Below the pieces are notes generated by a model that saw only the letters and a program-made list of their open reading frames with translations, did no database searches and was not told the DNA's origin. Both the position numbers and the translations under genes were made by a program. Shown here in pieces: positions 1 through 13,687 of a stretch of DNA of 64,000 bases. Every line of letters begins with the position of its first letter. The first letter of the stretch is position 1. Source of the stretch: Orbicella franksi (Eukaryota); NCBI GenBank assembly GCA_964199315.1, contig OZ116701.1, positions 22,382,001 through 22,446,000 of the forward strand, in the 5' to 3' direction.

Positions 1-3000
1 TCTAAGGAAGTTCAGGAAGATGTTCTATGTAGCATGATGGGTTTGGAGTGTGGGAAAGTAATGAGTGGTCTTTAATACTCTTTTATATCACTCTTATACT
101 CAACAGTGAGAGTAGTAAGTTACTACTCTTATTGTTGAGGATAAGAGTGACACTGAGAAGACTCTGACCGCTTTAGGCAACCATTTCATGCCTCACTAAC
201 ATTTGTTTTTTGAAAGAGTCAAGTTTGGATTTGCCAATCAAACTGAGCATGAAACTATTGACCAGTATGTTGTGAGATTACACCAGCTGGTGTAATCTCA
301 CAACAGCTGAATTTGAGAGTCTCTGTGAAACTTTAATTCACAAGATTCAGCACCTTGTGACAGGCTACTTAGGGAACGCCCAGTCCCTTGTTTAACAAGA
401 TGCATAGACACCCTGAGAGCCAGTGGATTGTCTAGAAAACACAAGGAGCAGCTTAAAGATGTAGTGAGTGATCCACAAACTACCATACATGCAGCAGACA
501 AACAGATTCCTGGAAACAGAAAGCAAAGTCGACACAATTGAGGACTTGAATCAAAGTGTAAACAAGACAAAAGCAAGTGCAAAGCAATGCAAGTTCTGTG
601 GCAACAATCACCCTTATGATAGAACCAAATGTCCAGCTTCTGACAAGACCTGTCTTAAGTGTGGCAGACAAGGACACTTTGCCCTTAAGTGTCAGGAGAA
701 GAATCGTGTCTCATGTGCACCAGCCAACAAAGGTACACCACACAAGTGCAATGCCAGGATATGCAGAAGGTGGCAAGTCAGCCTCTGACACTGATGAGTC
801 AGAGTGAGTATCTTTGTTGCTGAACATGTTGGAGTTGTTAGCAGTAACATGGGCAAATCCTCTTTCATGGTACCACTCACATTTTACACTGAGTACATTC
901 CTATCATCACAACTCAACTAGACACGGGGCAACACAAAGCACTATGTCTTCTACCGACCCCCTAAATATATTGCAGAGTGGGGAAGTCAAGTTGGTACCC
1001 CCTGGTGGGAAGATAAGACTTTCCGATGGACATGTGGTTGAGCCATTGGGATCTTACACCTTGAAAGTCAGCTGAACAGTGGCTCAAGATGCAACACATG
1101 CATCAAGCAAGGCTGGATATCTCTAGGATCAGACCAGTTCATTCACTCATTAAACAGTAAGAATTACAAACCCCTCTCATTTGACAAAGTTATGAGAGAT
1201 TTTGAAGACATGTTCACTGGTCTGGGTTACCTTCCGGGGAAGGATCACAAAGAGATTGATCCAGACATGAGACCAGTTCAGCATACTCCCCAGCGTGTCA
1301 CAGTACCACTCAAAGCAAAGCATAAGGAAAAGATTGATGAGATGGAAAAGCAAGGGATCATCATCCAAGAAATCAAGCTGACCGACTGGATAAGCAGCTT
1401 GGTAGCAGTGCAGAAACCCGGAAAGTTAAAAGTCTGCATAGACCCTTGAGATTAAAATCAAGCTATCAAGAGGCCAAAGTACCAAATGTCTACAGTCCAT
1501 GAAGTTTTGCAAAGCTAACCAAAGCTTAAGTATTTACTGTCTTGGATGCAAAGGATGGCTTTTACCAAGTAAAGCTAGACAAAGAAAGCTCCTTGCTTAC
1601 AACATTGTGGACCCCATTTGGTAGGTATCCGTATTTACAAATGCCACAAGGTATCAGCAGCGCACCCAAAAACTATCAGCATTGTCAGGACAAAGCACTT
1701 GCAGGTCTTAATGGTGTAGAAGTAATTGCAGACAACATTCTGTGTTGCAGCAGTGGAGAAACTATTGAAGATACTTTAAAGGATCACAACAGCAATTTAC
1801 TGAACTTGCTGGATTGTGCTTGCAGCATGAATTTGGAGTTAAAAAAGAAGAAGTCGAGATTGAGGCTAGACCAAGTCACCTACATGGGCAATTCGTTCAC
1901 ATCTGAAGGACATAGACCAGATCCCATGAAGGTGGAGACCATTGCAAGCATGCCTCAACCAGATGACTAGAAAGCAGTTCAATGCCTTCTGGGTTTATGC
2001 CAACTTAGAAGTCTGACCCACTACTCAAATTAACAAAGAACAATGCCATGTTTGCATGGGAAAGTCAGCAAGAAGAAGCATTCCAAACCATCAAGAACAT
2101 GATCTGTTTGACAACAGTGCTCAAATGCTATGAGTAGCCAGTGAAACCACCATCCAATACAATGCATCAGAGTCTGGCCTTGCAGTCACGCTTCTTCAGA
2201 ATGGGCAGCCTGTGGCATTTGTGTCAAGGTCATTGTCAGCTGTAGAGCGCAGATATGCACGAAACAATAGAAAAAGACTGCTTGGCGATAGTTTTCGCAT
2301 GCAGCCGTTTCAATCAGTATCTGCGTGGAGGAGAATCAATGACAACGGAGACAGACCACAAGCCACTGGTGCCAATATTCCAGATCACTTCAATCTACAC
2401 CAAAACAACAGCGACAGATGCTCCTTTGATTACAGAAGTACAACCTTCATGTAAAGTACCTTTCTGGATCACAGATGTACATTGCTGACATGCTAAGCAG
2501 AGCTTACCTCCAAGTTGATCACAGCCAACACAGAAGCATCCCAGAGTATCAGCCATGAGCAATTATTGTTTCCAGAGATTGCTAACATTAATCAAGCTAC
2601 TTACATGCACTTATCAGAACGTACTCATCAGCAGATCAAACAGTACACAATCGCAGATGCCGCATTGCAAAGTCTTGTGAACATGATTAGGACAGGTTGG
2701 CCACTAACCAAAGAGGAGGTTCCAGATTGTATCTGCGAGTATTGGAACTACAAAGAAGAGTTGACAGTTCAAGGTGGAGTCAAGTGAAAGTGATTGTCCC
2801 TGCTTCTATGAGACCTTAAATGATTGCAAGAGCCCACTTCAGCCACCTTGGGCCCTATGCTTGTGTTTATCAAGCACAAGATGTGTTCAGAACTATGAAG
2901 TTTGCAATGACTTCTTAGCTAGCACACAAAAAAGAACCATTGATGACCCACAAGATTCTTCAAACTCCTTGGTCAAAGGTTGGACAAGATCTCTTCACCC

Positions 3001-3040
3001 TCGGTGATGAGAACTTTTTAGTGACTGTTGATTACTACAG

Positions 3041-3232
3041 ATGTATTTATGCTCATTGTGTTCTCTTCGTTGGTATTTTGGCTACACAATGTGTAACACA
3101 TTTAGGCGGGTTTTTCGCAGTCTTTTGTTTGTCGTATTATTTAAATACGCTTATCACGTATTCATCTTCACTTTAGGACAGTTCAGTGCCTATCAGTTGT
3201 ACTGTCGATTTAGTTAGTTTCTTACTTTCTCT
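3041..3232 (+). repeat. Split direct repeat A1 (partner A2 at 3979-4170)
   Basis: atgtatttatgctcattg...aatacgcttatcacgtattcatcttcacttt...ggacagttcagtgcctatcagtt is present at both 3041 and 3979; moderately diverged. Confidence 0.9.
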
Positions 3233-3237
3233 ATATA

Positions 3238-4429
3238 ATGCCCAAGGACGTTGAGGTTTTGGAGGATGCTAACACTGGCTCTATCGGACCTTTTGAAGAT
3301 CTTAGAGCTTATTTTGACCGAAAGTTTTCTCATCTGAAGTGCGAACTCTCAGATGATCAAGCTAAGTCTTCGTCGTCTTTAGTTAAGAAACTTAAGTCTG
3401 AAACGAACTTAACTTTCAAGTTTAGTGGCAACAAGAAACAATTTGAGTCCAACACTGAGATACGTTTCTCAGAGTCTTGCTTTCGTGCAGTTGCTAAAAT
3501 CCATTTTCGATCTTGAGTGCTTGGATAACCAAGAAGTCTCAGCATTAATTCTTAAACTTGAGAAGTCTCTCAACTCCACCTCCAAGGCCACTAAGTGGTG
3601 GTATAAACTCATTAGGATTGCTGACAAATCTGAAGCTGGCTGGGCTGCTGTTGATGAGTACAGTACTTGTCTGATGAGGTTGCTTCGGCATCTGAAGATG
3701 AAAAGAAGATCCGTTCTGCTGAGCAGAGAGCTTTGAAAAAGAAGAAAAATGCCCAGGTTGCAAAGTCCAGACAGAAATTGAGTATTTTTGCTTTGTTCTT
3801 CTTGGCTTTGCCCATTCTTTATTGTATTAAGCTGTTTTTCAGGTCGAATACTATGGGCACTGCTGTACCTATTCCTCCTTTACAATGAATTCATTGTTAT
3901 TGTATCACATTGGTGTGTTTTATGAGTGAGAGTTTAGAACATAAATAAGATATTTTCGGTACGCAGTTTAGAAAATAAATGTATTTATGCTCATTGCAAT
4001 CTCTTTGTTAGTATTTTGGTTACGCATTGCACGACGCATTTAGGCAAGTTTTTCGGAGTCTTTTGTTTGTCATATTATTTGAATACGCTTATCACGTATT
4101 CATCTTCACTTTACTTTAGGACAGTTCAGTGCCTATCAGTTCGACCGTCAATTAGTTTTTTATTTTCTCTTCTCTTACAGGTTCCTAGGCATCCATTATC
4201 GTCATCTAGTTTGGCATCGGCTTCCTCTATTTCTTCCCATAACTTCACTAATTGTCGTCCTCAACCACAGAAGAGCAGCTCCCAAAAAGCCAGGAATGAT
4301 ATCTGTTTCACCTGTGGAAAGGCTGGCCATTGGAGAGCCGAATGCACCTCATCCAACTCCTATTTCACAGCCAGATCAACGTTTAAGCAGCTCCCAGACA
4401 AAATCTCCGGCACTGCTGGGCTGCAGTAA
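3238..4429 (+). pseudogene. DIRS-type gag in two parts (3238-~3777 and 4181-4429), separated by the B1-A2 block
   Basis: N-part: KFSGNKKQF, IRIADKSEAGWAAVDEY, SDEVASASEDEKKIRSAEQRA (with frameshifts). C-part: Ser-rich linker followed by CFTCGKAGHWRAEC (CCHC knuckle). Confidence 0.8.
3841..3978 (+). repeat. Split direct repeat B1 (partner B2 at 4802-4939)
   Basis: aggtcgaatactatgggcactgctg...gcagtttagaaaataa, 138 bp in both copies, with few substitutions. Confidence 0.92.
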
Positions 4430-4800
4430 CTCCATATCGGAGCCTGATGTTGCCAGTGAAACTATTGAAGGTATTTCTGATTCTGGCCACGTTCTTGTGG
4501 ATTTTTTTTTAATTTGAAAGTGCTCTGTCTAGTATACCCATAGTTAAAGGTGGACTCAGAGCTCATTATAATTTCTGGTCTCAAACTTTAGAGACCAATA
4601 ATTTTATTCTTCCTGTCATTCAAAAGGGTTATGCTATTCCATTTATCAGTAATCACAGCTTTAGGTCCAGCGGAGCTACAGCAGCTGCAAATCTGAATGT
4701 TCCAGATTGTCTCTTTAAAGTTCATGGCAGAAGTCTGACTCAGCTAAGGATGGATATGTTTGTGATAAAGTCGATTCACGGCTCTTTGTGCCAATGAATA
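4430..4800 (+). pseudogene. Start of pol fused by a deletion to the tyrosine recombinase C-terminus
   Basis: IVKGGLRAHYNFW...ILPVIQKGYAIPF (pol start) joins at ~4653 directly to HSFRSSGATAAANLNVPDCLFKVHGR..SDSAKDGY (HxxR box and catalytic Tyr of YR). RT, RH and most of YR are missing. Confidence 0.85.
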
Positions 4801-6153
4801 TAGGTCGAATACTATGGGCACTGCTGCACCTATTCCTCCTTTACCATAAATTCATTGTTATTGTATCACATTGGTGTGTTTTATGAATGAGAGTTTAGAG
4901 CATAAATAGGATATTTTCGGTATGCAGTTTAGAAAATAATGATTTTGAGCTTGATCTCCTATCAGATACTACTGCAGAATCAGTGGTAAACACAATCACA
5001 TTTTTGCCAAGTTCTCTCACAAATGGGAATTTCAGCACACTACCAGTTCACCATTACACAGCCAAAGCAATGGAAAAGCTGAGTTGGTGGTCAAAATTGC
5101 AAAGAATCTAGTAAAGAAGGCAAAGCCAGGTAACAAAGATCTCCAGATGTCCTTGCTTGAGTCGCATAACACACCTGACAGCAATGGATTAAGCTCAGTC
5201 TAAAAAATGATGTCTCGAAGGACAAGGACCACCATTCCAACAACTGAAGCATTACTGAAGAAGAAATAACAACAACAAGCTTTATCACCACATTAAAAGT
5301 CAAACTTAAATTACAGCATAATATATTAATACAAATGGGGGTAACATTTACTCAGAATCACTAAAAAGCTAATCAAGCTGAGATACAAGCCAGAGGTTAT
5401 AGATAAGGTGTATGACAACATCAAAAGGAAGAGACAGCAGGCAAAAGCAGCACATGACAAACATGCAAAACCATTGCCCAAGCTCCAGGTAGGAGAACCA
5501 GTAAGGCTTCAACCCACAAATCCTAAAGCACCTTGGGAGAAAGGTTCATGTGTGCCAAAAGTTGGACCACGTTCCTTTCTTATTAAGACAGAGGGCAGAA
5601 ACCTGTACAGACGGAATCGCAAGTTCATTCATCAAGATCCTAGCCACAATATAATAATGCTTCATCGGACATCAGTGGCACAATTCCACAGAGTCGCACT
5701 TCACCCGACATGGGGTCACCAGCCAAGTCATTACCAGTTTCCAAGGCAGATTCTCCTGTGAAACAGGCACAAACAATGACACGGATTCATGAAAGTCCCC
5801 AGCCAAAGTCTACTGCAGTAGAAGAGATTGACTTTGCAGCCACAACAGACTGTTGTTACTTGAAGTGGTAAAACCAGTGTGCGTCCTTCCAGATTTTATG
5901 ATTTTGTGACCTAGAGACAATGAACTTTGAACTTTTAACATTTGTGAGTCTACAGCACTGAAGAAAACAAGATCTTGAACTACAAGTATTTTAAGAAGTA
6001 GAACTTTGAACATTGAGTTACTGCTAGAAAACAATTTAAAGAAAAGCATTACACCTTATCAGTGAAGAATTTTTCACGTTTAAGTCAGCTTTGTATGATT
6101 TGAATTAAACATTTTATTTGTTATTTGTTTGCTTCTCATCTTTTATTGTTACA

Positions 6154-6300: not shown

Positions 6301-6629
6301 ACTGATTTTTTTTCAGTGGAGACAAGTGACAGCTAGAAATATGTCTGCATTTGCAAGCTAGTGAATAAGTATCCTGAATGCAGATATGATTTTTAAATGT
6401 GGCTAAATATGATTTGGGCAAAGTTAGACTCAAACCAATGCAGTCAGCGGTTTCCCCTTTTACGGTACGTGACTTGCGGGGTGGCCCTTTGGAGATTTGC
6501 AGGGCTGTTGTCTCACATTGCATTGCACGTATTGTGCTGCCAGCTGATCGTTGCGGATCATTTGCTTGTACTTTGGCGAATCTTTGTGGATTCTCGCTCT
6601 GAGTATCGCCTGTCTTTGTCGCTTTTGAC

Positions 6630-7880
6630 GTGATGCACACTAGAAAAACGCTTAACAGCCGGTCGGCGGCTTACGATGCATTGTCTCTCGTGCCGGAGTC
6701 CGAGGAAATTCCTTCGCCACCGGTTTCAACGCCAGTGGATTCTAGCATGGCCTCAACAGCTCCATCCACTTTGCCATCATCTGTTTTATCGCCAACATCT
6801 CCCGCCTTTCTGGCCGCCGTGGCAAACGCCGTCCTGCAAGTACTTTCGGCCCAGCCAGTCCCAAGCCGTCCTAATTCTAGTTCTTCCACGAGCGTGGCCA
6901 TTTCCGGAGGCGTTTCTGCTCCGCTGGCTAATCCTAGCCAACTTGTTGCCCAAGCCTCGTCTTTTGCCGCTTCTGGCGTTGGCTTTGCATCCTCTCCACC
7001 GGCCACGACGACTCCTCTTGCTTCAGGTAGGCCAAATAATTTTGTTGTCCCTACCTTTGTGTCAACCTTCTCCGCTCCAATTCCGTCGCTCACTCTCTCG
7101 GCATCTTTTAGCACTGTCAATGCGGCTTTTCCCTCGAGTGCCATTAGCGCTACACCATTGGCTCCATTGCCTGTGTTGCATCAACAGTTCGTGGTGGGCC
7201 CTGGGTTTTCCCCCGTTCCGGAAAAGTTAGTCAGTCAGATCGTGGCTGGGAAGTTTGTTGAACTCCACGAGTTGCTGCCCTCAAACATTGTTCTCACAGA
7301 ACCTGAGCCTCAGTTGCTGTTCGATGGGCACCTTGTGTTAACGTCCCCGCCGAAGAAACCTGAGCGGCGCATCGAAGATATTTCCACATGGTTGGAGGCT
7401 TTCTGTTTACTACCTTATCATCGTGTCATACTTCCCTCATCGCTGGAAAGATCTCCTGCAGTATCAACTCCTGATACTCCGCACATATCGCCAGTTCTCC
7501 GGTCGGGTTTGGTTGTCGTACAACCGAGCGTTTAGAGAGAATGCCGCGGCCTCTAACCTGACAGATTGGTCGCAACTAAACAGCACGCTGTTCAGCTTTC
7601 ACTCGGCTGGCTGGTCCTCACGCTCTCCTCACGATTCTTTGGATGGCCAAAACGAGCCCGCAGTGCTGCTTCTTTGCAGATCATTTGCAAATCATGGAAC
7701 CCGGGTCATTGCGTAGCTCCCTCAGCGTCGTGCCATTTTGCTCACAAATGTGCCAGCTGCCATGGCCCGCACCGCGCTGGAGTTTGTCCAGCTGAGACAC
7801 TCACTAAGCCCAGCTTGTCCTCTAAGCGTTCTCCTGACTCTCTACCTCCCCGGTCCAGCAGCAAGTCCCGTCATGTGTAG
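6630..7880 (+). pseudogene. Ngaro gag-like ORF1 (frameshifted)
   Basis: Ser/Pro/Ala-rich N-terminus; VVGPGFSPVPEKLVSQIVAGKFVELHELL; IEDISTWLEAF; WLSYNRAFRENAA; C-terminal CKSWN..GHC....CHFAHKCASCHGPHRAGVC. Spread over three frames. Confidence 0.85.
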
Positions 7881-8166
7881 ACTTGCCCACCCGCCTCTTG
7901 CACTGTTTCCATTATTGAGTATTTTTGTCCCCAGTTTTTTTTTAGCCATGCCCATTAGGGATCCAGGACTAAATGGTGTACTTGTGACCGTTCTCGTGTT
8001 ATTAAAATTGATTGTTTCGTTTGTTACCTTGTCTGTCCATCTGCGTAACTCAGGGGGTTTTGGGAGGGCTATTTAGGCCTTCTTGGGGCTGTGATTTACC
8101 GGCACTTGTGTCTCCTGTTCTTTTTCCTTCCTAGTCAGACTCCCCCCAGTTTCTGCAGTCACCCCC

Positions 8167-9737
8167 TTGCAAGCAGAGCAGTTTGCCTGGGAGTTGCTAT
8201 TTCATCCCAATCAGCAGAAGGTCAATTTTGTGTTAAATGGACTGCGCCATGGGTTTCATTTGGGTTTTTCTCCCTACCAAAAGCTCAAGTCCACGAAGAA
8301 AAACAAGCCATCCGTAGCTCAACATCCCTCTGTGGTCAACCAGTATTTGGCCAACAAGGTTTCCCTAGGTAGGGTGGCAGGTCCTTTCAGTGTTCCTCCC
8401 TACCTGAATCTTCATGTTAGCAGCTTCCCAAAAAAGGCCAACCAGGGAAGTGGCGCCTCATCATGGACCTTTCCTCCCCAGGGGGGGCTAGTGTCAACGA
8501 CGGGATTGACCCGAAAGAATTCACCCTTCATTACATCACAGTCGATCAGGTGATCTGCCTAGTCTCCAAACTTGGTCTGGGGGCCCTCATGGCCAAATTT
8601 GATGTGGAGGCCGCCTACCGCAATGTGCCCGTACACCCTTCCCACCACGTCCTTCTAGGGATGAAGTGGCACGACCAATTCTACATGGACCTGGTTCTCC
8701 CCTTTGGCATTCGATCGGCTCCATTTATCTTCAACTCCATCGCAGACATGGTGGAGTGGATCCTCGTCAATTTCCACCAGATTCCAGATCTCCTCCATTA
8801 CTTGGACGACTTCATTACTGCAGGCCCCGCCCAGTCCCTCCAGTGCGCACAGAATTTGGCTACTGCCCTGGAGGTGTGTCAACGGCTTGGTCTACCGTTG
8901 CATTCTGGCAAGTGTGTGGGCCCCTCTACAGTGCTTGTTGTCTTGGGTATTAAGCTTGACTCTGTCAACCAACTGGCACGTCTCCCCCAGGAGAAGTTGT
9001 TACCACTGCAAAATCTGATCGGTTCTTGGCTTCCTCAAAAATGGTGCAACAGACATGAGCTTGAATCTCTTATTGGACACTTGCATCACAGTGCCAAGGT
9101 GGTCTGGCCGGGAAGGACATTCTTGCGCCGCATGATTGATCTGTTATGCTGCTTTCGGAGGAGAGATCACCCCATTCGTCTTAACCGAGAATTTCATCCA
9201 GATCTTCTATGGTGGCACCAGTTCTTGGAGGATTGGCACGGCGTTAGCTTCTGGCTCTTCCGAGGACTGCTGCCCGAGGCTGATGTTGAAGTGTCATCCG
9301 ATGCTGCAGGCTCGATCGGCTATGGAGTGTACATGAAGGGCCACTGGTTTGCTGGCTCCTGGGCTCCATCCCAGCAGCCACAGTCTATCACCTACAAGGA
9401 GCTCTTCCCTATAGTTCTCGCAGCTCATGTCTGGGGACATTTTTGGGTCAAAAAACATGTCCTGTTCCGCTCTGACAACGACGCGGTAGTCCACATCTTA
9501 AATACCAGAACGTCAAGAGTGCCTTGCCTAATGCGGTTGCTGCGCAGTCTGTTATTTTCCGCTGCACGTCACAGCTTCTCCTTTTCGTCTCAACATGTAC
9601 CTGGTGTTAACAATCAATTAGCTGATGCCTTATCTCGTTGCAATTGGCAGGAATTTCGGCGCTTGGCCCCAGATGCGCAGCCTCTTCCCACGGTGGTACC
9701 CCTCGAACTCCTGGCAGATTTGACATCTCCGCCTTAG
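8167..9737 (+). pseudogene. Ngaro reverse transcriptase-RNase H (one frameshift near 8430; 424-aa ORF 8463-9737)
   Basis: MAKFDVEAAYRNVPV, LPFGIRSAPFIF, HYLDDFI, KCVGPST; RNase H SDAAGSIG, ELFPI, FRSDN, NQLADALSR. Confidence 0.95.
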
Positions 9738-10722
9738 AACAGCAGTGCTACTCCTTCTTGACCCAGGGCCTTGCCCCCTCTACGCGTCGATCTTATGCAT
9801 CGGCCCAAGCTCAGTTTATCTCTTTCTGCACTCAACTTGGTAAGTTCCATTCCTTGGGTTCTCCAAGTCCTGCTGACGAATGGACGCTGTGCCTTTTCAC
9901 TACCTTCTTGGCCAAATGAATTCAGCACTCCTCCATTAAGGTCTACTTGTCCGGGGTTAGAGCACTCCACATTGAACAGGGGTTTCCAGACCCCCTTGCC
10001 AACTGTCTCCCCTTGCCAACTGTCTCCGCCTTAGGGTGGTCCGTGGTATCAAGCGCTGTCAGGGCTCCTCTTCTTCATCCCGCTTGCCTATTACTGATGA
10101 CTTGATGTTACTGATTTGGCAGTCTCTGGATCTTCGTCTCCCAGATCACCTCGTGTTCTGGGCTGCTTGCTCCCTTGTGTACTTTGGCTTTCTCCGCACC
10201 TCAGAGTTCACAGTGCCTAGTCTGGCTAGCTTCTCTTCATCACTTCATTTAGGAGTGCAAGACATTGCAGTGGATTCCTCATCTGCGCCCACGTGCATGC
10301 GCATTAAGAACAAAGGCTCAAAGACTGATCCATTTAGGAAGGGCACCTTTGTCCACATTGGCCTTGGCCGGCCCCCACTCTGCACGGTCCACTCAGTGAT
10401 GACGTATCTCGCCAGCAGAGGCGATGTTCCAGGTCCCTTGTTCCTGTTCCAGAATGGGCAGCCTCTTTCGCGTGCTTTGCTCACGGACTGGCTTCGGCAG
10501 ATCCTGGCCTCCGTGAACATTTCAGGCAACTTCTCTAGCCACAGTTTCCGCAGCGGGGCTGCCACTGTGGCAGCATGCAATGGAGTTCCTGATCACCTAA
10601 TACAAGCCTTGGGTCGCTGGTCAACCTCCGCCTATCAGCTTTACATCAGGACCCCCTCAGAGTCTTTAGCAGCCCTCTCCACTAAGCTGGCGTCTTCTCA
10701 GTGGCCATCAATCCCCCACTAG
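9734..10722 (+). pseudogene. Ngaro tyrosine recombinase (frameshifted)
   Basis: GLAPSTRRSYASAQ N-terminus; FGFLRTSEF (R), GSKTDPF (K), SHSFRSGAAT (HxxR), LGRWSTSAYQLY (W, Y). A tandem 17-bp duplication (ccttgccaactgtctcc x2, ~9994-10027) and another indel break the frame. Confidence 0.93.
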
Positions 10723-13687
10723 GGCTGCATCCACTTCCGCTGGCTGTGGACTACCAGTTCATCGGGCTATTGTCAGGCCATTTGCCCAGCAGCACAGCAA
10801 ACTTGCCCCCCAGCCAGATACCCTTCGCAGTTCTTGTGCCATTTTGCTCAACGCTGGCTTAGGCTTCGCTGGTCACCCGCGTCGCCTCTTAATGCCCGCG
10901 TCTTGCTTCCGCTTCAGAGCTCCTTCAGCGTCTTGGCCTGCAGTATCAGGTGGACGTCTGCATGGTCAGGTGTGTGCTGCTCCTTTTTTCGTTTGTTTGT
11001 GTGGGGCTAGGTGCTTGGGGTGTATTTGGGGATTGGAGGTTCCAGGTCACCCTATTCTCGGGTCCCTCCATTCTCCAAGCACCTGGAGAAAGGTTTTCCT
11101 TTGGGTGGTTCCCGCTTCCAGGGTTGCCATGGATACCTCCCCTTCCGCATACAGCTTCTGCTTCCCGCTAACCTTTCAGGCACCAGTTCCCAAGCTCATC
11201 TATTTGTGATGAGTTTAAATGTGGCTAAATATGATTTAGGCAAAGTTAGACTCAACCAATGCAGTCAGCGGTTTCCCCTTTTACGGTACGTGACTTGCGG
11301 GGCGGCCCTTTGGAGATTTGCAGGACTGTTTCTCACATTGCATTGCATGTATTGTGCTGCCAGCTGATCATTGCTGATCATTTGCTTGTACTTTGGCGAA
11401 TCTTTGTGGCTTCTTGCCCCTTCCCGTCCCTCCCTCTTGGTTGCTGGTCTCTAGGTAAGTACGGGTCAGGTAAGTTGTTTCCACTGATTCAAACAGTGTG
11501 ACGGTGCCAGTTAGCGGCTGCTTTTGGGGGTGGTTCCCGCTTCCAGGGTTGCCATGGATACCTCCCCTTCCGCATATGGTTTCTGCTCCCTGCTAACCTT
11601 TCAGGCACCAGTTCCCAAGCTCATCTATTTGTGATGTGTTTAAAACTTAAAACTCCAATCAGTACATTGAACATTAACCCTAAAAAGATGTTCTGTCCTA
11701 AAATTGTTTCTAAATATTTGTTTTGTGTGGTAATTTGTGATTAAGTATTTGATTCAAGTGGCCATATTAACAGGGTCAAATTTCAAAGCATTATACAGGT
11801 TGGAATTTCAGAATGTGGCTGTTGACCGTGTTAACGGAGTGGCCGCATTAATGGCATTTTCTAATAAAACTAGTGAGACAATCTCAGATAGTGCAGACTG
11901 CAATTAATAGCTCTGACACGGTAGTCCCATAAAGTACTCACCCCCGCTCGGTTCACTTCCAGTTTGTATCTACCTTGGTAGTCTGCTAGGGCTTTTCCCC
12001 TTAGCAGTGAGTACATTTCAAGGTTGTATTTTCATTCAAGGTCCGAAAATTACGTACAGTTACTGTTTGTCACAACAGCTTTTAAATTTTACTCTGGTGT
12101 TTTACGATGATTTTCATTCATTTTAAATTCAATAATACGTTGAACAAATGTGACAATTTAGCTCTTTGTTCTAACTTTGTACCTTGATACTTTTGTTTTC
12201 CTCGCAAAGGTATGTAACAGGAAACTCTTGTTTTCTCCAGAACACACAGAAGATGAGCTTGTTTTGGTGGATAAATGAAAGAAAGTTAAATATCTGACAA
12301 AGAAATGGAAGAGAAACAATTTTGTTTTTTCTCAAAACACAAATTTTCTTATCACAGATGAACAAGAACTAATTTAATTATCAGATAGTCAAAGAATACT
12401 TTCTTTTTCTGTTGCCATCTTTGTTGTTAACAACGAAACAATTCAAAATTAATAACAACAATATTGATTGATACCACTGGGAAGCGTTTCAATGAGAAGT
12501 ATTGAAGGTAAACAGCGCTACTTGGCCAATATTATCCTGCATCAATGAACGATGTTACCTCGGTAATGGTAAAATAACTAAATAGCAAGCCATAAAATGT
12601 TTGACTGAACAAACTACAGTAATCTGACACTTCTCCATATTAATGTAGATACCATCTTATCTTCTAACAGGCAATTTGATTCATTCTTTGATACAACCCA
12701 TACTGTCATTGGTGTGACACGCCCACATGCAAAACACTCTCACTCGCCGATCACATAGCCCTTCCAACCCCTAAGATGAATTTTTGCTCAAAAATACTCA
12801 AGTTAAGGACATTCGTGCCCAAGATGTTCCCACATACAGATTTTTTTAAACTTGCCACACAGAAAGATAATGATCTACTTTTGCCAAAAAGACAAAAAAA
12901 TGGGGGGGTGACCAACTTCATTTTGGAGAGAACATGCCTGGAAGAACACCCTAAATCTGAAAAAATTGGGTTTCGTAGAGCAAATGTGGCCACAGTGTCT
13001 GTAAGCCCAAAAATACTGCAATTAGATCTTTTAAGTGAAATGTTCTCTGCCAAATATTGCTTAAGTGGAGCTATTAAGTGAATTTTTTTAACTTCCCACA
13101 TTGATTTTTTGTCCATTTTTTCGACAATGTGGCGATAATTGTAGATAAAATCATTTCTGGTAAGAAAAGTAGGGGTCACCAAACGTCCAAGATCATTAAA
13201 TCCACGCAAAGCTATAACAATGGCCATCTGCCCTATCATTGTTCATTTTAGTACTTTGCATGTGTACTCAATGCATGACGTGGTGTGTGAATTTGGGTGC
13301 GCAATAAGGATGCGCAGAAACAATTAGCACAAATGTCCTCAAGAGAACTTTTTGCATTTAATACGAGTCGTAAGTTTACTCTTTTCACACAACACAACGC
13401 AATAACACTACTTCACTGAAAATAGAAAGAAAGACGAAAAAACCTCTCTGACACATTGAAAGTCTGATTTAATTAAATTGCACTTTAACTTGGTGCCACG
13501 CAGTCTTCTAAGAACATTTTAACAGTTTTCATACTTTTTACCTTTAAAAATATCGGACTGAAAAAGAATGTCATAAAATGCCCATCAAATAAAAATATTA
13601 AACTGCCACTACAGAGACATAAAAACTGTCCAGAAATGAAAGCTTCTTTTTCGTGTAATATACTGGGAACAGTAGCCAATAACTTGT

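Follow-up and report, generated by a model that had tools for sequence, protein, structure and literature searches.

A PAT-like retrotransposon family of anthozoans with its internal end-junction repeat inside gag, and a putative intron around it

How can a retroelement keep a usable gene when one of its own structural repeats lies in the middle of that gene? This question is raised by a tyrosine recombinase (YR) retroelement at 3041–4939 of a 64,000-nt stretch of Orbicella franksi DNA (NCBI GenBank assembly GCA_964199315.1, contig OZ116701.1, positions 22,382,001 to 22,446,000, forward strand), which as a whole is hereafter called the window and provides the numbering used below unless another copy is named. 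On the forward strand the element reads A1, gagN, B1, A2, gagC, start of pol, end of the YR gene and B2, where A and B are split direct repeats and the internal B1-A2 block is the junction of the two element ends, GAAAATAA/ATGTATTT (a slash marks a junction or splice border). This order and its coordinates, first proposed from the DNA letters alone (the sequence-only reading), agree with a repeat search and with the sequence itself, and the element occupies exactly 3041–4939. The comparisons described below suggest, with a rough probability of 0.6–0.65, that the interval between the two gag halves is an intron, spliced out of some of the RNA so that full Gag can be made.

The layout is not confined to the window. 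Relatives were found by protein search, with gagN and gagC searched as separate exons, and their contigs were then inspected; the order A1-gagN-B1-A2-gagC(CCHC)-pol-YR-B2 is present in five copies from five assemblies, namely the window copy, L055, L056, L057 (Porites lobata GCA_942486035.1, where the sequence ends after the start of pol) and L060. In all five, B1-A2 lies between the two gag halves, and the repeat order, the gagN-to-B boundary and the A-to-gagC boundary recur in independent copies of the source genome and of four other public assemblies. In L060, A1 and A2 are 99.4% identical, B1 and B2 are 99.2% identical, and both gagN and the CCHC open reading frame (ORF) are uninterrupted, while the gagN proteins form clusters of up to 107 members. 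As the layout recurs in other assemblies, the L060 repeats are nearly identical and the gagN clusters are large, it belongs to a family that has multiplied, and it is almost certainly a real family trait.

The source genome itself holds a handful of relics of this family, 85–88% identical to each other, which are C1 (A-gagN-B alone), C8 (A-gagC-pol-YR-B alone), and C9 and two others, which are fragments. The occurrence of each half alone might suggest that the window copy is a one-off rearrangement, a tandem or deletion product formed locally from two damaged copies of an ordinary element with a 3′ B1-A2-B2 block. This origin is barely credible, as the same junctions and order are found in four other assemblies together with full pol and near-identical repeats, no unbroken gag occurs in the split clade, and the whole unit interrupts a host ORF as a single, clean-ended insertion. 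No close sibling with an unbroken gag was seen among the gagN relatives inspected, and the CAGGTT microhomology once offered as a possible source of such a product is missing from the other lineages. The solo forms C1 and C8 would be the expected leftovers of B1×B2 and A1×A2 recombination, respectively, comparable to solo long terminal repeats (LTRs). Solo A-gagN-B units of ~0.95 kb are represented by C1 (L016 6737–7681) and, in another assembly, by L058 (~7380–8287) of a divergent lineage; with an ORF flanked by the promoter-side and the terminator-side repeat, they could be recombination leftovers or non-autonomous units. L058 and L059 were at one point taken as two independent solo units and turned out to be the same locus, being 99.9% identical over 4 kb. 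Further split-gag families in the source genome were also considered and rejected, as gagN occurs there only in the window and C1, and the other gag-like matches are mostly open frames of 200–310 aa, long enough for an unbroken gag.

The two halves derive from one gene. Amino acid comparison shows gagN and gagC each to be homologous to one half of the single Gag proteins of more distant relatives (P0064, P0088, P0093, P0109, P0118, P0181 and P0185), in which an N-terminal part is followed by a very conserved block (..IRIADKSEAGW..DEYLSDEVAS.SEDEKKIR..KK.K), a linker of ~50–60 residues and the CCHC knuckle. Among these relatives, L061 has an unbroken gag and the order A1-gag-pol-YR-B1-A2-(85 nt)-B2, shares its repeat termini with the split family (..CATAA/ATGTATTT) and has a gagN 47% identical to that of the split family. 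In a gagN tree built without the window copy (frameshifted) and C1 (internal stop), eight split-type rows lie on one side of a 96/98 branch and thirteen unbroken-gag rows on the other. Taken together, the unbroken-gag relatives, the standard layout of L061 and the grouping in the tree fit a single relocation of B1-A2 into gag, the split form then being the derived one.

The interval between the halves does not behave as coding sequence. In the window copy it is 403 nt long in the register discussed below (3778–4180), holds B1 (3841–3978) and A2 (3979–4175, as matched to A1) and contains six in-frame stops; across copies it measures 401–403 nt, with a variable length modulo 3 and 4–7 in-frame stops, so it is not read through. 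Coding constraint ends at a donor-like motif on its left border, upstream of which relatives align without frame breaks and downstream of which the tails differ by frame-shifting indels, and coding restarts at the AG on its right border, since the indels between lineages from this AG to the gag stop are of 3, 6 and 9 nt. On the right, A2 ends like a 3′ splice site, in a pyrimidine tract followed by TTACAG (4156–4180), while the same part of A1 runs into the gagN ATG at 3238; both had been noted in the sequence-only reading. This acceptor (pyrimidine tract and CAG/G) is kept in the window copy, C9, L055, L056, L057 and L060, representing three lineages ~30% apart in DNA, and is lost through a deletion in C8. 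It is specific to A2, as in L060 it falls outside the A1/A2 homology. Judged from the ORF coordinates, the donor position 3778 and the acceptor 4181 are both in phase 0 with respect to the gagN and CCHC frames, and removal of the interval restores one ORF that is unbroken in homologs (phase counting on the separate exons and comparison with unbroken Gag).

The left border is less conventional. The sequence-only reading had named two phase-0 candidates, CAG/GTTGCA (3757) and AAA/TTGAGT (3778), both of which are present and in phase with the acceptor. The former is not conserved, being CGC/ATTGCG in the Porites lineage. The latter, which differs by one base from the GTGAGT donor consensus, is not a decayed form of it. 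GT was expected at the equivalent position of other copies, yet all copies and lineages seen have TTGAGT or TTAAGT. The 11-mer at this border is AAATTGAGTAT in the window (3775–3785), AAGTTGAGTAT in C1, L055, L057 and L060, and AAGTTAAGTAT in the divergent L058 and L062. The motif, AAG/TTRAGTAT, is kept in four lineages, always in phase 0, with flanks that are unalignable between lineages, and is absent from L061 with its unbroken gag. In every copy the phase-0 register starts with TT and never with GT, the GT lying one base to the left (AA/GT), and among the relatives' ORFs that reach the motif, 40/41 encode K-L-S-I and 0/41 encode K-V-S-I. Except at +1, the motif agrees throughout with the U1 consensus, a second GT lies at +5/+6 (AAAG/TTAAGTAT in L062, CAAG/TTAAGTAT in L058, AAG/TTGAGTAT in the others), and the preceding exon end is purine-rich (..GAGAAAGAAGAAGAAC..).

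Natural TT donors of this kind are known from human genes. In reporters the donor of human FBXO9 (aAG TTAAGTAT) was spliced in two registers, +1 (in front of TT) and −1 (in front of the GT that G−1 and T+1 form) (Erkelenz et al. 2018, PMC6280755), while that of ETV1 was spliced at +1 only; a second GT at +5/+6 favours accurate use of +1, and TT donors depend on nearby enhancers (PMC6280755). The sequence aAG/TTAAGTAT is identical to that of L062, the Porites and window lineages having G at +3, and the FBXO9 and ETV1 donors likewise have the second GT at +5/+6 and a purine-rich upstream exon (PMC6280755). They differ in being introns of host genes assayed in human cells, whereas the split-gag motif is known from sequence and belongs to a cnidarian retroelement.

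The proposed mechanism can be outlined from these observations. The internal B1-A2, a copy of the end junction that follows the recombinase gene in relatives, has moved into the gag linker. The full-length RNA from A1 to B2 would serve as the genome, and a fraction of this RNA would be spliced over B1-A2, joining gagN in frame with the CCHC half and thus giving complete Gag. Spliced RNA would lack the junction template and give no new copies; that only unspliced RNA keeps the template, as had been proposed, is a reasonable inference. The TT donor, with near-perfect U1 complementarity, would be expected to be used inefficiently, which would suit an element needing most of its RNA unspliced. The 120 best database relatives of gagN, from a search whose length window would have admitted such an ORF, include neither a spliced nor an intronless one; this is weak evidence, which agrees with spliced RNA not giving insertions.

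Several points weigh against splicing of this interval. In every copy the base at +1 of the phase-0 donor is T instead of G, a type of site that is rare and weak, and use of the canonical GT one base upstream would lead into the pol frame and not into the CCHC frame. Agreement of phase alone has a one-in-three chance of arising. The acceptor is seen in three lineages only, L058 and L062 being known just as a solo unit and a short contig, and in the source genome the family survives only as the relics mentioned above. Finally, a Porites lobata gene model (P0136) joins gagN to CCHC by a different, copy-specific GT-AG pair and gives no support; its intron is a prediction artefact.

Other ways of joining or starting the CCHC frame were tried and discarded. 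The donor GA/GTATTT (phase 1) is paired in P0136 with an acceptor, CCAG/AG, that is absent from other copies, and together with the conserved CAG/G acceptor it meets a stop after ~22 codons. A second AG 8–9 nt downstream of the acceptor differs in phase between lineages. A start codon for the CCHC ORF inside A2 is present in L060 (7840) and absent from the window lineage.

NCBI gene models of Porites lobata (L057 8001–9098, CALNXK010000176.1; proteins P0136 and P0151) have been built on copies of the family; P0136 drops 24 gagN residues and P0151 fuses gagN to a recombinase remnant. Gene models of the P0136 and P0151 type are likely misread as host genes, and annotation will probably take the solo A-gagN-B and A-gagC-pol-YR-B forms for distinct repeat families.

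An alternative without splicing starts from A2 being a full copy of the A repeat, which would bear the promoter, and B1 a full copy of the B repeat, which would bear the terminator. A TATA-like box lies ~100 nt into A in all lineages (TATTTAAATA at 3138 in A1 of the window). The first ATG after it is the gagN start in A1, with no ATG in between in the window copy, and a pol-frame ATG in A2 (window, L060, L056 and L057; at 4296 in the window). The xAT-Gxx codon pair that forms the pol ATG is kept in three lineages despite differing CCHC-frame residues, and an AATAAA is completed exactly at the B/A junction, formed in the window by the end of B1 and the first A of A2. The element might thus consist of two transcription units, an A1-to-B1 mRNA for a gagN-only protein and an A2-to-B2 mRNA opening the pol frame, an arrangement to which the solo A-gagN-B units, looking like self-contained genes, would also lend themselves. 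Polyadenylation is known to be inhibited when a 5′ splice site lies upstream of the poly(A) signal. Given the AATAAA at the B/A junction, a U1-binding, poorly cleavable site upstream of B1 might restrain polyadenylation there, and under two units the motif would be a non-cleavable U1-binding site that damps polyadenylation at B1 and so permits some full-length genomic RNA, the CCHC frame being reached by another route or being lost.

We regard two such units as rather unlikely. The CCHC frame, the knuckle spacing and the stop are kept in three lineages ~30% apart, yet the frame has no conserved start codon of its own; since frame, spacing and stop are kept and indels occur only in threes, it is translated. 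The A2-specific pyrimidine tract and CAG would be left without a role. An 'AUG desert' after A2 was considered in favour of the pol ATG and dropped, as the absence of ATGs before it is not significant in shuffles (P 0.3–0.4 for the A2 part, the coding part being uninformative).

A further alternative concerns the register of splicing rather than splicing itself. When the exons are translated separately, the TT (+1) register joined to CAG/G leads into the CCHC frame and full Gag, while the GT (−1) register leads into the pol frame, the one in +1 overlap with gagC. Were the canonical GT alone used (AA/GT ... CAG/G), gagN would be fused to Pol and the CCHC part would be reached otherwise, e.g. 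by ribosomal frameshifting. All copies but that of the window have kept G at −1, and a reporter site of the form ..G TTAAGTAg was spliced only at the −1 GT according to the citation of Roca et al. 2012 in PMC6280755. From the first base of exon 2 the pol frame is open in the window copy, L057 and L060 and, as far as its indel, in L056, and substitutions in the gagC/pol overlap are spread evenly over codon positions (e.g. 30/19/28), compared with ~60% at position 3 in gagN and the pol-only regions. An open frame of this kind is expected from the CCHC-frame amino acids alone, however, as shuffling synonymous codons of the CCHC frame gives P(no stop) = 0.61, and we have set it aside as evidence of a fusion; the same +1 frame is open for 111 codons in L061, where gag is unbroken. 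The flat substitution pattern fits dual coding and could also reflect a weakly constrained linker, and the CCHC part would have no route of expression. Exclusive use of GT is accordingly improbable.

It is a little less improbable, and still doubtful, that the donor, like that of human FBXO9, is spliced in both registers, TT giving Gag and GT a GagN-Pol fusion, so that a one-base wobble would set Gag against Pol. This dual-register geometry fits the window copy, L057 and L060, and L056 up to its indel, and the tests of the open pol frame are not significant. If true, a one-nucleotide splice wobble would set the Gag:Pol ratio, the role that ribosomal frameshifting has in retroviruses, and, with the end-junction template lying in the intron, spliced RNA would give no new insertions. 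Of these possibilities, splicing in the TT register to make full Gag remains the preferred one.

The window copy itself is a dead, inert relic, with a frameshifted gagN and with the greater part of pol and YR lost to deletion. A1 (3041–3232) starts with ATGTATTT; in the repeat search its parts 3041–3175 and 3166–3232 match A2 at 3979–4113 and 4109–4175 with 87% and 78% identity, respectively, and B1 (3841–3978, ending with GAAAATAA) matches B2 (4802–4939) with 95%. Aligned with other copies, B extends ~15–20 nt further left, and the window B2 lacks ~22 nt on its left side. The proposed exon 1 (3238–3777) starts at the ATG 3238 directly after A1, is 87–88% identical to the C1 copy and is broken into three overlapping ORFs (3238–3516, 3425–3736 and 3667–3888). 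The proposed exon 2, gagC (4181–4429), comprises a Ser-rich linker, the CCHC zinc knuckle (zf-CCHC, PF00098, E 2e-06; 2.6e-06 in L060) and the conserved gag stop, and is overlapped in the +1 frame by a remnant of the pol N-terminus (4296–4646). At 4647, where BLAST against full copies joins query positions 1606 and 1608, an internal deletion has removed ~3.6 kb with the reverse transcriptase (RT), RNase H, the MT-like domain and the bulk of YR, leaving a C-terminal recombinase remnant (HSFRS.GAT..., 4654–4797, to its stop) homologous to L060 11330–11478, which falls within an ORF with a Phage_integrase match.

The element was inserted into a decayed LTR-retroelement pol on the same strand, with RT_RNaseH (2255–2488, Pfam, E 1e-08) followed by an integrase-like stretch (..FLVTVDYYS..), which covers 2255–3040 and resumes at 4940–5110. 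The host frame ..FLVTVDYY/S-DFELDLL.. continues from 3040 to 4940 without target duplication, and 3041–4939 is one clean insertion; such a join is what insertion by a tyrosine recombinase should leave. An Rfam scan of 2900–5100 for ribozymes and known RNAs returned only a sub-threshold match to a small nucleolar RNA.

Some further observations were made on the ends and interiors of the copies. The base pair to the left of ATGTATTT is AA in 4/7 copies (the flanks of A in L016, L021, L017 and L022 among them), as at the internal ..ATAA/ATGT, a hint of a short AA overlap where recombination takes place. In several independent copies, small insertions unrelated to each other break the A repeat at differing positions (L017 6586–6790, L055 9377–9875, L056 9614–9889 and L022 2390–3653); in L055 and L056 they are found in A1 only and not in A2. 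C8 (L021 ~5224–5954) contains an inserted repeat of ~730 bp with 661 candidates in the source genome at first look, the scored copies being 93–96% identical; short inverted matches at its ends suggest an element resembling a miniature inverted-repeat transposable element (MITE).

The replication of DIRS, PAT and Ngaro elements is still largely a model, of which the internal B1-A2 repeat is the key part. A repeat that has moved into a gene, a problem apparently solved by an intron, links RNA processing to competence as a genome, and indicates that a second relocation of the internal repeats is possible within the PAT group. A TT donor kept across lineages ~30% apart would be a rare case of long-term selection on such a site, and it sits where one-base imprecision would switch the gag and pol frames.

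The family is filed, on sequence grounds, as a PAT-like (Pat1-type) DIRS-order retrotransposon of anthozoans and not as Ngaro, as a weak Dam-like match occurs in all members scanned, the direct repeats are split and Gag has a zinc finger. The RT is recognized as RVT_1 (E 4.4e-12 in L060 and 6.2e-13 in L056), with a weak RVT_3 match in the next ORF, a region lost from the window copy, and the recombinase as Phage_integrase (L060:10280–11497, E 2e-07, above the Pfam cut-off). The Dam-like (MT) domain after RNase H is PF05869 in 3/3 members scanned, with a best E of 1.9e-05 and all matches below the curated cut-off; no solved structure matched the Dam-like region. An MT domain after RNase H separates the DIRS/PAT group from Ngaro.

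The closest known form is the echinoderm form of Pat1 (SpPat1), elements of which are also reported from Nematostella and Lottia and share RT, RNase H, the tyrosine recombinase, the zinc-knuckle Gag and the A1/B1A2/B2 repeats with the split-gag family, besides a Dam-like MT domain that is weakly matched in the latter (PMC4157794). The internal B1-A2 of that form lies after the coding region, as it does in L061, whereas here it lies inside gag with splice-like borders. In nematode Pat1 and in Kangaroo of Volvox, the internal repeats occur between MT and YR (PMC4157794), so the earlier statement that B1-A2-B2 lies downstream of the ORFs in PAT/Ngaro elements was too broad, and relocation of the block has a precedent. 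The position in the split-gag family is neither that of the echinoderm form, after YR, nor that of the nematode form; in nematode Pat1 and Kangaroo the repeats lie between domains, with no split protein-coding gene or splice signals reported in the available part of PMC4157794, and Kangaroo further differs from the split-gag family in its inverted YR and its lack of a zinc finger.

Ngaro elements have split direct repeats, tyrosine recombinase, RT, RNase H and the absence of a target duplication in common with the split-gag family, but lack the MT domain and carry B1-A2-B2 downstream of YR. An example lies next to the element in the window (6392–11644), with the standard layout A1 6392–6597, B1 11103–11219, A2 11214–11417 and B2 11528–11644, RVT_1 at 8463–9737, Phage_integrase at 10036–10722, and a pol 23% identical to that of the split-gag family.

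No description of internal repeats inside gag, or of an intron around them, was found in the searchable literature, which does not cover Repbase and Dfam. Introns kept in retroelement genomes occur in Ogre LTR retrotransposons and Penelope-like elements, and retroviruses use suboptimal splicing. In these systems partial splicing separates message from genomic RNA, as is proposed for the split-gag family, and the intron of Ogre likewise interrupts the coding region; to our knowledge, no Ogre, Penelope-like or retroviral intron carries the element's own end-junction repeat, and none uses a TT donor.

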